From sequence record MK054219.1: 14,972 bases of DNA, one strand, 5' to 3'. The translations under genes and the position numbers were made by a program. Below the pieces are notes generated by a model that saw only the letters and a list, made by a program, of their open reading frames with translations, did no database searches and was not told the DNA's origin. This document shows positions 1-14,043 of this stretch, in pieces; position 1 is the first letter of the stretch, and every line of letters begins with the position of its first letter.

Positions 1-46
1 CGCCGCGGCCGGGATTTGAACCCGGGTCAGGGGCTCGACAGGCCCC
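1..46 (-). tRNA. 3' half of tRNA-Asp(GUC), serving as the viral attachment site (attP or att duplicate); not a complete tRNA gene
   Basis: Minus strand reads GGGGC-CTGTCGA-GCCCC (anticodon stem-loop, GTC), TGAC, CCGGG-TTCAAAT-CCCGG (T arm), CCGCGGC (acceptor 3' strand) and discriminator G. No D arm or 5' half is present upstream. Confidence 0.93.
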
Positions 47-250
47 CGAAGTGGGGGATACCCCCACACCCCCATTAGGGGGATACCCCCTAAGACCCCC
101 ATTGCTAATGTAAAATTCGATTACCTTATCTAAAGGTGCAATATAATGATGCCTTTCCTTATTATCATCACCCTTCTCTATTGAGTAAACATAATACCTA
201 CCTTTAATCTCTTTTACGTAGAATTTAGAACCCACGTAAAAGTTAGGCAT
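1..250 (-). CDS. int: Integrase N-terminal fragment (intN), 83 codons, reading through the att site
   Basis: Manual translation from ATG at 250: MPNFYVGSKFYVKEIKGRYYVYSIEKGDDNKERHHYIAPLDKVIEFYISNGGLRGYPPNGGVGVSPTSGACRAPDPGSNPGRG, with no stop before base 1. The KGRYYVY motif resembles the SSV1 integrase N-terminus. Confidence 0.93.
   Translation of the reverse strand, partial: MPNFYVGSKFYVKEIKGRYYVYSIEKGDDNKERHHYIAPLDKVIEFYISNGGLRGYPPNGGVGVSPTSGACRAPDPGSNPGRG
51..93. repeat. Two tandem palindromes with core GGGGGATACCCCC next to att
   Basis: GTGGGGG-ATA-CCCCCAC (51-67) and TTAGGGGG-ATA-CCCCCTAA (75-93); cores start at 53 and 78, 25 bp apart. Confidence 0.9.
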
Positions 251-274
251 TCTGAGAATGTTAATTCACGGGGG

Positions 275-282
275 TTTAAATA
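275..282 (-). promoter_or_regulatory. Putative TATA box of a leaderless int transcript
   Basis: TATTTAAA on the minus strand ending 25 nt upstream of the int ATG (250), preceded by a purine-rich BRE-like stretch. Confidence 0.6.
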
Positions 283-471: not shown

Positions 472-1037
472 TTCCGGCTCACCCAATTCTTGAACTGATT
501 GGGCTTAAGCCAATCTTTCCACTTAGTTATTACGTAAGTCCTTTCGCCCTTAGCAAATTCTGAAGGCTCGGCCAAGAAAGCCCGCTTATTCTTCTCTAAT
601 ACTTTTAATCTAGTGTAGGGCATAAACCTAATTTCACCCTCATTATCATTAACGCTAACAAACGCCGTATGATAGCCTTTTGATTCCAGAATTTCCCCAA
701 CACTTACTTTTACTCCTAATATTGCTATTATTGCTCCATTTAAGCCAAGTCTATGAGCCCTTTTAATGCTTTCAAATTTGCTAAAACTTGTCCCAGTAAT
801 ATCAAGATATAATTTATATTTAGGTAAATAGAAGTCGAACTTCCTAAACGGATCACCTTCCCACGTCTCATCTGTTTTCTCTGTACTCATTACACCTATG
901 CCGTTTACTACTATATCCTCTTCCTTCAGATTAAGAACTAATTGGAGCCATTTCCTTGCAATATCTTCCCTAATTGATGTAAGAGCCCAAAGCTTAGCGT
1001 ATTTATCTTTTAATGTATTAGCAAAAGAATTATTCAC
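468..1037 (-). CDS. Probable PD-(D/E)XK-fold nuclease of the SSV1 D244 / SSV8 D212 type, 189 aa
   Basis: GTG start 7 nt after a GAGGTGA Shine-Dalgarno; FDFYLPKYKLYLDITG resembles the nuclease motif II/III core; position in the int-proximal early operon fits D244-like genes. Family assignment from memory. Confidence 0.65.
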   Translation of the reverse strand: MNNSFANTLKDKYAKLWALTSIREDIARKWLQLVLNLKEEDIVVNGIGVMSTEKTDETWEGDPFRKFDFYLPKYKLYLDITGTSFSKFESIKRAHRLGLNGAIIAILGVKVSVGEILESKGYHTAFVSVNDNEGEIRFMPYTRLKVLEKNKRAFLAEPSEFAKGERTYVITKWKDWLKPNQFKNWVSRK

Positions 1038-5705: not shown

Positions 5706-6066
5706 AACGCACCTGAGGAGTAACCATAAGGGGATTACGATTCACGTGACTTTGGAAGAACTGGAACGCTATCATTCTCTGACGCCGGAACAGAAAAGAA
5801 TAATTAGGGCTATTGTTAAAGCGTTAATCCATAACCCCCAGTTGTTAGATGAAAGCGGTTATCTCTATAAGTTACTTACAAGTAAAGCAGTATCGCCTTA
5901 CGTTTGTCCCCTTTGCTTAATGCCATTTTCTTCATCAGTTAGTCTGAAGCAACACATCCGTTATACGGAACACGCAAAGACTTGTCCCATATGCAAAAAG
6001 GAGTTTAGAAACACTGATTCAACCCTAGACCATGTTTGCAAAAAACATAATATCTGCGTTAGTTAG
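5689..6066 (+). CDS. b129: B129-family double C2H2 zinc-finger DNA-binding protein, 125 aa; start revised to ATG 5689
   Basis: VCPLCLMPFSSSVSLKQHIRYTEH and CPICKKEF..TDS.LDHVCKKHNICVS match SSV1 B129. Confidence 0.93.
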   Translation: MESGSKTHLRSNHKGITIHVTLEELERYHSLTPEQKRIIRAIVKALIHNPQLLDESGYLYKLLTSKAVSPYVCPLCLMPFSSSVSLKQHIRYTEHAKTCPICKKEFRNTDSTLDHVCKKHNICVS

Positions 6067-6078
6067 GCCCTTTTTAAA
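6065..6078 (+). promoter_or_regulatory. AGGCCCTTTTTAAA promoter motif for the A291-like gene, overlapping the b129 stop
   Basis: TATA-like TTTTTAAA begins 31 nt before ATG 6102; near-identical motif at 7267, 11268 and 11463. Confidence 0.75.
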
Positions 6079-6101
6079 GTTCTATTTTTCCTCTATTCCA
6101 A

Positions 6102-7267: not shown

Positions 7268-7280
7268 GGCCCTTTATAAA
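7267..7280 (+). promoter_or_regulatory. AGGCCCTTTATAAA promoter motif for the vp4 operon
   Basis: TTTATAAA starts 31 nt before ATG 7304 and overlaps the upstream stop codon. Confidence 0.78.
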
Positions 7281-7303
7281 CTCACATAATTTTTTATCGC
7301 TTA

Positions 7304-9945: not shown

Positions 9946-10435
9946 GCTAATAGTATACGTCCTATTGTTTGACGTCTTTCTAGCGTTAATGGTAGGTGCT
10001 TACGGCGGTATAACGCCACCGTCAATTCCACCGATACCTTCATATAGTTTTGACCAAGCTTTAGCGTCATCAATTGTATGGACTGTGGGGTGGCCACCCA
10101 TTACGTTATGGGGGCCCGTGACACTTATTCCGCCGTTTTCCATTTTAGGGGCTAACTTTCCGGGACTAACTTTACCGGGTGTAACGATACCGGGTGTAAC
10201 ATTGTTTAGTATATCGTTTTCATGGTTGGCCCCAATCCTTTACCTGATAGGTTGGCTAACGTGGATGTTTCAGACAACCGATAGTGTTTTAGGGTATCTA
10301 ATATCTATATTCACTTCTTCTATAGGATTGTTAGCGAATGTACCGACAGTAGGGCCGTTTTTGACGGCTTTCGTTTTGATTGTCAATTTCATCCTCATTT
10401 GGGAAGTGGTGAAATTGATAAGGGGTGGGCCATGA
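9935..10435 (+). CDS. c166: C166-family membrane/virion protein, 166 aa; start revised to ATG 9935
   Basis: [13 protein letters not shown] start after a GGAGGTG SD gives 166 aa; Pro-rich centre and TM helices; canonical position. Confidence 0.85.
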   Translation: MGTKLIVYVLLFDVFLALMVGAYGGITPPSIPPIPSYSFDQALASSIVWTVGWPPITLWGPVTLIPPFSILGANFPGLTLPGVTIPGVTLFSISFSWLAPILYLIGWLTWMFQTTDSVLGYLISIFTSSIGLLANVPTVGPFLTAFVLIVNFILIWEVVKLIRGGP

Positions 10436-10776
10436 CTTATAACGCTAATGAGATTAGGGCTAAGATACTAAGGCGTAAAATCTTAGAGCTTATTGTGGAA
10501 AACTACGTACTCTCTGCTTCTCTCATCTCTCACGCACTGCTTTTGAGCTATGCAACAGTGCTAAGACACCTCAGAATCCTTAACGAAGAAGGATACATAG
10601 AGTTGTACAAAGAAGGTAGGACGTTATATGCTAAAATTAAAGAGAACTCTAAACAAATTCAGATTCTGAATTCAGAACTGGAGGGGTTTAAAAAGCTTAG
10701 CGACAAGCCCCTATTGACCAAGTATGAGCCTAGTACTATTGCAAAGACCAAAGCTAAGAAAGGGCGAAGCAACTAA
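10432..10776 (+). CDS. b115: B115-family winged-helix (ArsR-like) regulator, 114 aa; start revised to ATG 10432
   Basis: [35 protein letters not shown] pattern; ATGA overlap with the c166 stop; 3' end overlaps the vp1 promoter and 5' end. Confidence 0.87.
10681..10694 (+). promoter_or_regulatory. vp1/vp3 promoter (GAGGGGTTTAAAAA)
   Basis: TTTAAAAA at 10687-10694 upstream of the vp1 ATG; resembles the SSV1 T1/T2 promoter as recalled. Confidence 0.7.
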
Positions 10777-10987
10777 CATAGGAGCAATTTTAGGGCTATT
10801 CATCTTTATACTTATAGGCATAGTACTATTGCCCGTCATCGTTAGCCAAGTAAATAACTTGACTTCCGGTACTGCACCTAGCGTAACCGGCACAAACGCC
10901 ACACTCTTACAACTAGTCCCACTGTTCTATATCCTAGTCTTAATCATAGTCCCCGCCGTAGTGGCGTACAAGATTTACAAAGAGTAA
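10724..10987 (+). CDS. vp1: Major capsid protein VP1 precursor, 87 aa (predicted mature 73 aa from E at 10766)
   Basis: [35 protein letters not shown]...[26 protein letters not shown] matches mature SSV1 VP1; in-frame stop at 10715 excludes a longer precursor. Confidence 0.97.
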
Positions 10988-11207: not shown

Positions 11208-11265
11208 ACTTGTACTGATAGTTGTACCGGCGGTTGTAGCGTATAGGATATACAAGTCTGACTGA
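10999..11265 (+). CDS. vp3: Minor capsid protein VP3, 88 aa
   Basis: Two TM helices; C-terminal [26 protein letters not shown] paralogous to VP1; GTGAGG SD upstream. Confidence 0.95.
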
Positions 11266-11266
11266 A

Positions 11267-11289
11267 TAGGCCCTTTATAAAGTCATAAT
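11267..11289 (+). repeat. 23-bp direct repeat copy 1 (promoter of the mini capsid paralogue; downstream T-tract may terminate vp1-vp3)
   Basis: TAGGCCCTTTATAAAGTCATAAT, identical to 11462-11484; TATA starts 29 nt before ATG 11303. Confidence 0.92.
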
Positions 11290-11302
11290 TTTTTCTCTTT
11301 TG

Positions 11303-11464
11303 ATGAACGCGTTAATAATAGCATTATTCATATTTTTACTTGCAGGAATTATATCACTACCAATCATAATTTCTGACACTTCACTTTTACAGTTAGTGCC
11401 ACTATTCTACATAATATTGGTTGTTATCTCTGCTCTAATTGTATATAGGATTATGTATAACTAG
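11303..11464 (+). CDS. 53-aa third VP1/VP3 paralogue lacking the inter-helix loop (not in ORF track)
   Basis: [53 protein letters not shown]; LFIF..GI..LP and [10 protein letters not shown] align in register with VP1; dedicated promoter and downstream T-tract. Confidence 0.88.
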   Translation: MNALIIALFIFLLAGIISLPIIISDTSLLQLVPLFYIILVVISALIVYRIMYN

Positions 11465-11484
11465 GCCCTTTATAAAGTCATAAT
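11462..11484 (+). repeat. 23-bp direct repeat copy 2 (promoter of the a82-b251 operon), containing the stop codon of the 53-aa gene
   Basis: TAGGCCCTTTATAAAGTCATAAT; TATA starts 30 nt before ATG 11499. Confidence 0.92.
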
Positions 11485-11498
11485 CTTTTTTCGTTTTG

Positions 11499-11747
11499 AT
11501 GAGTGCGTTAGGGGATGTAATCTACGTAGTCTCTATTCTTTTCCCGGCCGTGGGTTTGATAAGTAGGAACTATCTTGTAAATTTAATGGGGACGTTCTTA
11601 GGCGTCATAGGGTTTCTGGTTTTTGTCCAAGGGTATACTGATATAGCGTTCTCAGGGTCTACTTTCTATTTAGCGATATTCCCGCTCTTACTGGGGTTGG
11701 TGAACTTAGGGTTCTTCTTCAATTGGGTGAGGGAAGAGAGGATATGA
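11499..11747 (+). CDS. a82: A82-family membrane protein, 82 aa; start revised to ATG 11499
   Basis: MSALGDVIY...three TM segments...FFFNWVREERI; length and position match SSV1 A82. Confidence 0.88.
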   Translation: MSALGDVIYVVSILFPAVGLISRNYLVNLMGTFLGVIGFLVFVQGYTDIAFSGSTFYLAIFPLLLGLVNLGFFFNWVREERI

Positions 11748-13349: not shown

Positions 13350-14043
13350 TGCAACATTAATATTAGCATCTGAAATCTATAAGGCGTATAAGGAAGGCTC
13401 ATTTCTAAATGTTATAATATTTGGAAAGCAAGGTGCGGGTAAGACAACATATGCCCTAAGGGTGGCTAAGGAAGTCTTAAAGATGATTGATAAAAACTTA
13501 GATGAGCAAACGGCATGGGAAAAGGCGTTATCGTATTTAGCTTTTAACGTTAGAGAAGCTCTTCAGAAATTAGCAATAATCGTAGAACTTCATAAGCAAG
13601 GGCATATAGATTCTAGGTTACCTCTCTTAATCATGGATGACGCATCAATAGACCTTATTAAATATAATTGGTATGATAAGGAAAATCAAGAGTTCTTTAA
13701 ACTAAACGTTTTGGCTAGAACATGGGTTTCGGCAATAATTTATACTAGCCCTATGATGTCGGACATTTCAAAGTTCTTAAGAGAAAAGGGATGGATGGTA
13801 GTAAAAATAACTAGGAATGGCGGTTATAAGGATACTGAAAGTGTGGCGAAATTATACGGTAGGGTGATTAAGCTTAACAAACAACATACTGATTTTGTAG
13901 GAAGATATAAGCCTATAGCGATTGACAGATTTACGAGGAGGATGCCGGATAGGATATATGAGGAGTATATGAGGAAGAGGAACAGAGTTATGGTATCGAT
14001 AGCCGAAAGACTATTACAAAGTGAGGAAAATTCGTTAGTTTGA
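13330..14043 (+). CDS. b251: B251-family P-loop NTPase, ~237 aa; start revised to ATG 13330
   Basis: Walker A GKQGAGKT, Walker B LLIMDD, LREKGW motif; GGAGGTG SD at 13314-13320. Confidence 0.9.
   Translation: MKMKQNNATLILASEIYKAYKEGSFLNVIIFGKQGAGKTTYALRVAKEVLKMIDKNLDEQTAWEKALSYLAFNVREALQKLAIIVELHKQGHIDSRLPLLIMDDASIDLIKYNWYDKENQEFFKLNVLARTWVSAIIYTSPMMSDISKFLREKGWMVVKITRNGGYKDTESVAKLYGRVIKLNKQHTDFVGRYKPIAIDRFTRRMPDRIYEEYMRKRNRVMVSIAERLLQSEENSLV

Follow-up and report, generated by a model that had tools for sequence, protein, structure and literature searches.

A loop-less third member of the VP1/VP3 capsid protein family on a proposed recombination-mobile promoter cassette in Sulfolobus spindle-shaped viruses

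Background

The fuselloviruses are a model for the way in which a lattice of tiny hydrophobic hairpins can build a spindle-shaped capsid of variable size. They have been described with two capsid-protein paralogues, VP1 and VP3, and VP1 to VP4 are given as their structural proteins; no report of a third capsid-protein paralogue was found in the accessible literature. The genome of M.06.0.8v2.SSV (MK054219) raises the question whether such a third paralogue exists. This Sulfolobus spindle-shaped virus (SSV) is an alphafusellovirus, integrated in a Sulfolobus islandicus strain from the Mutnovsky volcano, Kamchatka (PMC6452263), and the window analyzed here is its complete genome of 14,972 bp. 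Downstream of the genes for VP1 and VP3 it contains a short open reading frame (ORF), which we call the mini-VP gene, between two identical repeats. An earlier note, made from the DNA alone, had proposed that this ORF is a hidden third paralogue that encodes a loop-less VP1, and had added that no such paralogue was known to its author. We have asked whether the ORF is a member of the VP1/VP3 family, how it is equipped for expression, where it came from and what its product might do.

Homology of the mini-VP protein to VP1 and VP3

The mini-VP ORF encodes a protein of 53 amino acids and 5.9 kDa from an ATG start, and an in-frame TTG is present at 11300. BLASTP aligned the protein to the VP1 of the same virus over both helices, with 41% identity, a single gap of 16-17 residues and an E-value of 5e-12, which bears out the relationship proposed before. 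The alignment with VP3 was confined to helix 2 (E 2e-8). Since hydrophobic helices can align through their composition alone, the local-alignment scores were compared with those of 3000 shuffles of the mini-VP sequence. This resulted in z-scores of 15.5 for VP1 and 9.5 for VP3, versus scores at the level of chance (z between -1 and 1.3) for four other membrane proteins of the same genome. Moreover, the PHROG profiles of VP1 and VP3 each matched the protein in two stretches, covering both helices (1.2e-6 and 1.9e-5).

At the level of individual residues the conservation is highly specific. The ten-residue core motif is identical to that of VP1 at all ten positions, as had been noticed from the letters, and seven of the ten codons differ, all of them synonymously. 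Likewise, all ten columns that are invariant over 26 family sequences have been retained: helix 1 shows L..F...G and helix 2 shows LVP.FY....A...Y, corresponding to L8, F11, G15, L31-V32-P33, F35-Y36, A44 and Y48 of the mini-VP protein. The gene shows three changes in length (an N-terminal fusion, a loop deletion and a deletion of one codon) and every one of these is in frame.

Like VP1 (PF06281; SSV19, PDB 7xdi), the mini-VP protein has two hydrophobic helices in a hairpin with the invariant L, F and G in helix 1 and LVPLFY in helix 2. It also carries the VP1-like 'LP' in helix 1 and groups with VP1 on the tree. Unlike VP1, it has neither a propeptide nor the conserved Glu cleavage site, and begins with MNAL straight at helix 1. 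The 19-residue loop of VP1 with both of its N-x-T sequons has been replaced by DTS, which leaves a turn of 3-4 residues without the V, P and G that are otherwise conserved in the loop; a sequon scan confirmed that the protein is free of N-x-S/T sequons. In SSV1 the exposed loop between the helices is glycosylated in both VP1 and VP3. Within helix 2 the conserved VPA has become ISA, with loss of the proline, and one residue has been deleted. The extent of the divergence is also different, as VP1 orthologues from all over the world are 78-97% identical, whereas the mini-VP protein reaches 47%. The protein is wholly hydrophobic (grand average of hydropathy 2.0) and has one basic residue. The G+C content of the gene is 29% (30% at third codon positions), that of the genome 38% and that of the VP1 gene 42%.

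One element of the original proposal had to be given up: the gene is not hidden. It is already present in MK054219 as the coding sequence (CDS) AZG03521.1, where it is described as a hypothetical protein and not as a known structural gene. Indeed, it has been annotated in seven of the eight genomes that carry it, and BFVD holds a predicted structure of an orthologue that is 96% identical. The eighth genome, MK054216 (strain M.04.0.29.SSV), contains the intact ORF at 644-805, unannotated in its record. With R49 as its only tryptic site, the protein would escape routine proteomics.

Judged by these comparisons of sequence, the ORF is a real protein-coding gene and a VP1-derived third member of the VP1/VP3 capsid family. 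We have little doubt about this identity or about the anatomy of the cassette as described below. The feature as a whole is a strongly derived family member, annotated already but unnamed, on a recombination-mobile promoter cassette.

Predicted structure

AlphaFold2, supplied with the alignment of the 26 family sequences, placed helices at residues 2-24 and 32-52 with a mean predicted local distance difference test score (pLDDT) of 89. The resulting layout is a first helix of about residues 2-24, a turn formed by S24-D-T-S27 and a second helix that runs from residue 28 or 32 to residue 52; the model thus predicts a hydrophobic alpha-helical hairpin. The nearest PDB neighbours in a fold search were generic two-span hairpins (PsbZ) with non-significant E-values, and SSV19 VP1 was not retrieved, so that the fold search says no more than 'helical hairpin'. 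The family profile matches the solved structure of SSV19 VP1 (7xdi) at 2.5e-28. In that structure the helices form the contacts within and between the strands, the loop constitutes the outer surface and the termini point towards the DNA (PMC9351363).

Two hydrophobic helices with a short turn between them represent the general architecture of this class of capsid proteins, and are found as well in the His1-type proteins and in VP1/VP3 of the Bathyarchaeia 'Huangdivirus'. Unlike the mini-VP protein, all of these are main capsid proteins and not extra copies, and a sequence relationship was not detectable.

The flanking promoter/terminator element

The mini-VP gene is enclosed by two exact copies of the 23-bp sequence TAGGCCCTTTATAAAGTCATAAT (Table 1), in line with the earlier description. 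The homology between the flanks extends further, from 11243-11314 versus 11438-11510, and comprises the repeat families D2 and D3 at a spacing of 195-196 bp. Both repeats correspond to the element of SSV1 in which box A of the T9 promoter, the T9 start and the T2 terminator have been annotated, and the promoter and T-tract that had been attributed to the gene therefore match a characterized element. More specifically, according to the experimentally mapped features in the SSV1 record, box A of the T9 promoter occupies 13521-13526, the T9 transcript starts at 13551 and the termination site of T2 covers 13549-13560. The T9 start is located one base before the ATG of A82. The SSV1 element consists of TAGGCCCTTTATAAAGTCATATT, a T-rich tract and TGATGAGTGCGTTAGGGG, and the same T9/T2 element is found after VP2 in SSV11. 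Both copies in M.06.0.8v2.SSV fit the pattern: GGCCC precedes box A (TTTATA), which is followed by a T-rich spacer and a predicted start at or next to the ATG. The distance between box A and the ATG is 29 nt for the mini-VP gene and 30 nt for A82 in this genome, and 31 nt in SSV1.

Given the match with SSV1, the element on either side of the cassette would have two tasks, to terminate the late capsid transcript and to initiate the early, leaderless T9 mRNA, and the mini-VP gene is predicted to form a leaderless, insulated unit. In SSV1, T9 is an early transcript and T1 and T2 are late ones (PMC9608457); unlike VP1, which belongs to T1/T2, the mini-VP gene thus has a promoter of the early type. 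We infer that a working promoter and terminator are present at the cassette, and the gene is probably expressed from the duplicated promoter. The scan for sigma-70 promoters and hairpin terminators is uninformative here, because its models are not valid for archaea.

As the element is bifunctional and conserved across SSVs, it might be argued that the ORF is irrelevant and that what matters is either the duplicated promoter/terminator, which might insulate the A82 operon better or affect its dosage, or else a small non-coding RNA. However, such a spacer needs no open VP-like frame, the homology at the protein level is clear and the changes in the core motif are synonymous only. Moreover, the Rfam, tRNA and RNA-folding checks on the cassette were negative, with no signal of structure (folding z = -0.15). 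We consider this explanation very improbable.

The cassette module measures 195 bp and is made up of the mini-VP ORF and one copy of the T2-terminator/T9-promoter element, the second copy forming the boundary. The TAG stop codon of the gene is overlapped by repeat copy 2. Over the first 12 nt the A82 gene (ATGAGTGCGTTA) and the mini-VP gene (ATGAACGCGTTA) are identical at ten positions (MSAL versus MNAL), after which the similarity ends. The last codons of the mini-VP gene, VYRIMYN-stop, parallel the AYRIYKSD-stop of VP3. The unit looks like a VP-type gene that was fused to the promoter and first four codons of A82, with a copy of the element of its own after it.

The mini-VP gene sits in the slot that is occupied by vp2 in SSV1, as had been pointed out, and also in SSV11. 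Like vp2, which is known from SSV1, SSV11 and about ten fuselloviruses, it follows vp3 and precedes the T9 element, its stop codon overlapping TAGGCCC, and it is accessory, patchy and dispensable. In contrast to the mini-VP protein, VP2 is a basic and soluble DNA-binding protein without similarity to it, and vp2 lacks its own promoter and is transcribed from T2. The cassette illustrates how a combined promoter/terminator element may act as a portable recombination site for the exchange of small genes in the vp2 slot.

A search of the window with the motif GGCCCTTT(A/T)TAAA(G/C) yielded four sites (6066-6079, 7268-7281, 11269-11282 and 11464-11477), where 0.28 are expected by chance. The second of these is found just upstream of the VP4 gene (7304), and the motif looks like a promoter type that is shared by several transcription units.

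Occurrence and recombination

The earlier note had called for a search of fusellovirus genomes for relatives of the peptide. They were found in eight of the 16 Mutnovsky SSV genomes (MK054205-08, -11, -16, -17 and -19) and in none of the other collections that were searched. Neither frameshifts nor stops, which the note had named as marks of a decaying duplicate, were observed: all eight copies are intact and together contain three variable nucleotides, all non-synonymous and conservative.

Beyond the Mutnovsky cluster no relative of the mini-VP protein was retrieved by a word-indexed search of 5.8 billion proteins or by a HMMER search of 1.84 billion representative proteins. The same holds for IMG/VR, searched both with the peptide and with the VP alignment, for the GTDB genomes and for the GenBank phage records (tblastn and blastn). 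The JGI metagenomes contained 47 fusellovirus loci, in which all matches were of the VP1 type with a full loop and none was of the mini type. Finally, 57 other fusellovirus loci were scanned with hidden Markov models, every ORF from 25 aa upwards being included; this identified VP1, with or without VP3, and no third paralogue, with LAFJ01000430.1 as the sole exception. On this metagenome contig of 1.2 kb, an additional full-length VP1 in inverted orientation (18-275, minus strand) accompanies a VP1-VP3 pair (481-732 and 736-1026, plus strand); the third VP-like ORF is probably an assembly artefact.

The other eight Mutnovsky genomes have an empty site with one copy of the element. These sites are of two types with respect to the T-tract, one identical to copy 1 and the other to copy 2, and a crossover in TTTTGATGA or in the 23-mer would yield exactly both types. 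We infer that homologous recombination between the element copies accounts for both the gain and the loss of the module. Precedent is provided by SSV1, where direct repeats in the same region excise vp3 in vivo (PMC6080066). In the record of SSV12 (MK054204) the T9 element at the empty site includes ambiguous bases (N, around 1385-1400), and these may reflect a mixed population at that position.

Several other observations point to a mobile module. In the VP1-VP3 tree carriers and non-carriers are interleaved, and in four or more sister pairs one member has the cassette and the other lacks it. The cassettes differ at 0-2 positions per 195 bp, versus 5-14 per 264 bp for the adjacent VP1, and their diversity is about five times below that of the flanking capsid genes. 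In addition, the cassette is found with both of the deeply diverged A82/DUF5493 alleles of the Mutnovsky population (68.5% nucleotide identity). Strain M.06.0.8 contains a second provirus, v1 (see PMC6452263 for the pair), which encodes VP1 and VP3 that are 100% identical to those of M.06.0.8v2.SSV, lacks the cassette and has the other A82 allele. As the pair is identical in VP1 and VP3 and different in A82 and cassette state, a recombination breakpoint is located exactly at the T9 element. The presence of the gene does not correlate with genome size (11.3-18.2 kb for carriers and 11.4-17.2 kb for non-carriers), and the gene has been kept in three of the streamlined genomes of 11 kb.

This pattern has to be weighed against the view that the cassette is a neutral by-product of recombination. 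By an illegitimate crossover, a foreign VP1-type gene that was later shortened would have acquired the promoter and first four codons of A82, and the ORF would be intact merely because it is young in the population, spreading and vanishing at the T9 element without a function of its own. The narrow distribution with an occupancy of 50%, the fact that three out of three polymorphisms are non-synonymous, and the chimeric 5' end with its 10 out of 12 nucleotides as in A82 are all in line with this view. So is the demonstrated recombination junction: identity with the co-resident provirus is 100% as far as the element and 68% beyond it. On the other hand, the cassette is less diverse than the adjoining core genes and has been kept in three genomes that lost most of their accessory genes. 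Moreover, a strong duplicated promoter in front of a gene for a very hydrophobic membrane protein is unlikely to be free of cost.

Origin of the mini-VP gene

At the nucleotide level the mini-VP gene is 58% identical to the resident VP1 gene and 53% to the resident VP3 gene. In comparison with all 25 VP1/VP3 sequences considered, the proportion of synonymous differences (pS) is 0.63-0.93, which is saturated, and the proportion of non-synonymous differences (pN) is 0.30-0.45. A yardstick is provided by the same 53 codons in VP1 of M.06.0.8v2.SSV and VP1 of ASV1, SSV6 and SMF1 (betafusellovirus and SMF1), for which pS is 0.75-0.81 and pN is 0.15-0.18. Between the resident VP1 and the mini-VP gene the values are 0.74 and 0.31, so that pN is about twice that between genera. 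In the maximum-likelihood tree the mini-VP protein forms a branch of 0.8 substitutions per site within the almost invariant VP1 group, beside the VP1 of SSV6 and ASV1, with weak support (ultrafast bootstrap 78).

A recent copy of the resident VP1 or VP3 gene is ruled out by the saturated synonymous sites, the doubled pN and the G+C content of 29%. Taken together, the rates point to a VP1-type gene that has been evolving as a protein for about as long as the fusellovirus genera have been separate, under a constraint relaxed some two-fold. The simplest account would be that the gene was imported from a distant, unsampled donor and then spread by means of recombination at the T9 element.

The same data bear on the neutral view of the cassette. 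The AT-rich outlier composition and the loss of the conserved proline, loop and propeptide speak in its favour. Against this stand the three length changes, which were all in frame and resulted in exactly a minimal hairpin, and the family-invariant residues that were retained despite synonymous saturation. There are three substitutions only among the eight copies, so that a dN/dS ratio inside the group is without power. As selection in the eight copies is unmeasurable and the constraint may predate the truncation, a neutral origin constitutes a serious rival, although we deem it unlikely on the whole.

Possible function

We tentatively favour, as possible rather than probable, a role of the mini-VP protein as an accessory, recombination-mobile and VP1-derived hairpin that packs with VP1 and VP3 as a capsid subunit. 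The module would have entered the Mutnovsky virus population from an unsampled distant donor. A T9-type promoter, which is early in SSV1, would give rise to a short leaderless mRNA of the gene, and the T-tracts would insulate this transcript from the late VP1-VP3 transcript. The product would span the cell membrane twice, as a hairpin whose two ends lie in the cytoplasm, and, because the family-invariant helix residues have been kept, could pack side by side with VP1 and VP3. It would then be a dispensable subunit that gives glycan-free positions in the helical capsid strands and tunes assembly or shape, analogous to the ratio effect of the paralogue VP3.

SSV1 assembles at the cytoplasmic membrane while budding, and a two-span hairpin would therefore be well placed to meet VP1 and VP3. 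Furthermore, deletion of VP3 alters the shape of the virion, which implies that the make-up of paralogues tunes the morphology. Like VP3, the mini-VP protein is a dispensable VP1 paralogue that is encoded nearby and lacks a propeptide; the removal of VP3, which is excisable through direct repeats, changes the shape of the virion. Unlike the mini-VP protein, VP3 has a loop even longer than that of VP1, occurs in more than 90% of the fusellovirus genomes and is co-transcribed with VP1. Co-assembly of the mini-VP protein as a component of the virion can be put forward as a tentative suggestion at best.

Several points weigh against a role in the capsid. The protein matches the Pfam family VP1_VP3 (PF06281) in helix 2 only, with 18.2 bits (E 0.0025) where the gathering cut-off is 25 bits; with the loop, one third of the profile is gone. 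What has been lost (the proline of VPA, the loop and the propeptide) is invariant in VP1 or essential to it, and the propeptide of SSV1 VP1 is required for infectivity. The gene is dispensable, as half of the local viruses and all other fuselloviruses that were searched do without it. In addition, the early-type promoter is an odd choice for a structural protein, and the low G+C content, overall and at third codon positions, may be a sign of decay where selection is weak. Among the eight copies the similarity is too great for a selection test within the group, and the signal of purifying selection could have built up in the donor gene prior to its reduction to the mini form.

Alternatively, the protein could be a capsid-derived interference factor, similar to the decoy or dominant-negative subunit that the earlier note had in mind beside a modulator of spindle curvature. 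As a membrane hairpin made early, and independently of VP1 and VP3, it would co-polymerize with incoming or rival capsid proteins and poison competing SSVs or satellites of the pSSVx/pSSVi type, or block superinfection. The separate promoter of the early type fits, as does the fact that the packing residues have been kept and the surface loop and proline lost. The accessory, patchy and recombination-mobile distribution is typical of conflict genes, and the Mutnovsky SSVs are known to compete via other accessory genes, the B310-type toxins (PMC8628083). A precedent is found in some rudiviruses, where a second capsid-protein paralogue has been kept in the genome, as in the present case, and is reported to be absent from the virions; it illustrates a non-structural fate, although its fold and virus realm are unrelated. 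Nevertheless, one and the same cell line contains the carrier provirus and a non-carrier SSV of identical VP1 and VP3, which is mild evidence against a strict exclusion of close relatives, and a poisonous subunit would harm its own virus equally, VP1 and VP3 being identical. Interference in this general sense seems improbable to us. In its sharpest form, the mini-VP protein would be a capsid-derived weapon: an early hairpin without glycans and propeptide that derails the assembly of rival fuselloviruses or satellites via the near-invariant VP1, while the carrier is spared by timing or stoichiometry. That is more improbable still; if true, no dominant-negative capsid decoy would have been described before it from an archaeal virus, and this one would travel on a recombination-mobile cassette.

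Whichever role applies, a natural third paralogue with the two packing helices only comes close to a ready-made minimal construct. The mini-VP protein could reveal what the loop, the glycans, the propeptide and the proline of helix 2 contribute to assembly, curvature and stability. Closely related natural viruses with and without the gene are available, some of them identical in VP1 and VP3, and the comparison has thus already been set up. SSV genetics exist, as do RNA-seq data for S. islandicus infected with the three carrier viruses SSV13, SSV14 and SSV17 (PRJNA750755).

Gene order and annotation of the locus

The features around the cassette are collected in Table 1. The A82 homologue is followed by a C84/A92-like gene and then by B277.

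Table 1. Features of the mini-VP locus of M.06.0.8v2.SSV (positions in the window)
Feature	Position	Strand	Remarks
B115-like winged helix-turn-helix regulator gene	10432-10776		First in order around the locus
VP1 gene, major capsid protein precursor, 87 aa	10724-10987	+	Pfam PF06281 8.9e-20; PHROG 11172 1e-44
VP3 gene, minor capsid protein, 88 aa	10999-11265	+	Pfam PF06281 4.6e-32
Upstream arm of the duplication, full extent	11243-11314	+	Last VP3 codons, T9 element and first four mini-VP codons; homologous to 11438-11510
Repeat copy 1, 23 bp, transcription factor B recognition element (BRE)/TATA element of T9 type	11267-11289	+	Box A TTTATA at 11274-11279; exact repeat; near-identical to SSV1 13514-13536
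T-tract TTTTTCTCTTTTG	11290-11302	+	Predicted terminator of the VP1-VP3 (T2-type) transcript; spacer to predicted leaderless start at about 11302-11303
Mini-VP gene, 53 codons and TAG, VP1-type two-helix hairpin (predicted)	11303-11464	+	Homology; AlphaFold2; annotated as AZG03521.1
Repeat copy 2, 23 bp, T9-type promoter of the A82 operon	11462-11484	+	Box A at 11469-11474; exact repeat and SSV1 match
T-tract CTTTTTTCGTTTTG	11485-11498	+	Predicted terminator of the mini-VP transcript; spacer to the A82 leaderless start
A82 homologue (DUF5493)	11499-11747	+	Pfam PF17597 9.7e-43

A link to the SSV toxin was considered and dropped. A minireview on SSV1 from 2022 (PMC9608457) names A82 as the toxin that kills uninfected cells. 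The primary paper that it cites (PMC8628083) assigns this role to B310 and its analogues, which belong to transcript T3, and mentions A82 solely as a core gene for building the tree.

The VP1 precursor shows the conserved Glu cleavage site in ...RKGE|ATNIG and two N-x-T sequons on the loop (N45 and N58). Its CDS in GenBank (10829-10987) begins at the TTG at 10829, in the middle of helix 1, and comprises only 52 aa, where the full ORF runs from the ATG at 10724. This full ORF overlaps the end of the B115-like gene and has a GGGGTTTAAAAAG box about 30 nt upstream. The same shortened VP1 CDS is found in most of the related records. VP3 has been reported to be glycosylated in SSV1, and the VP3 of M.06.0.8v2.SSV contains zero N-x-S/T sequons according to the sequon scan.

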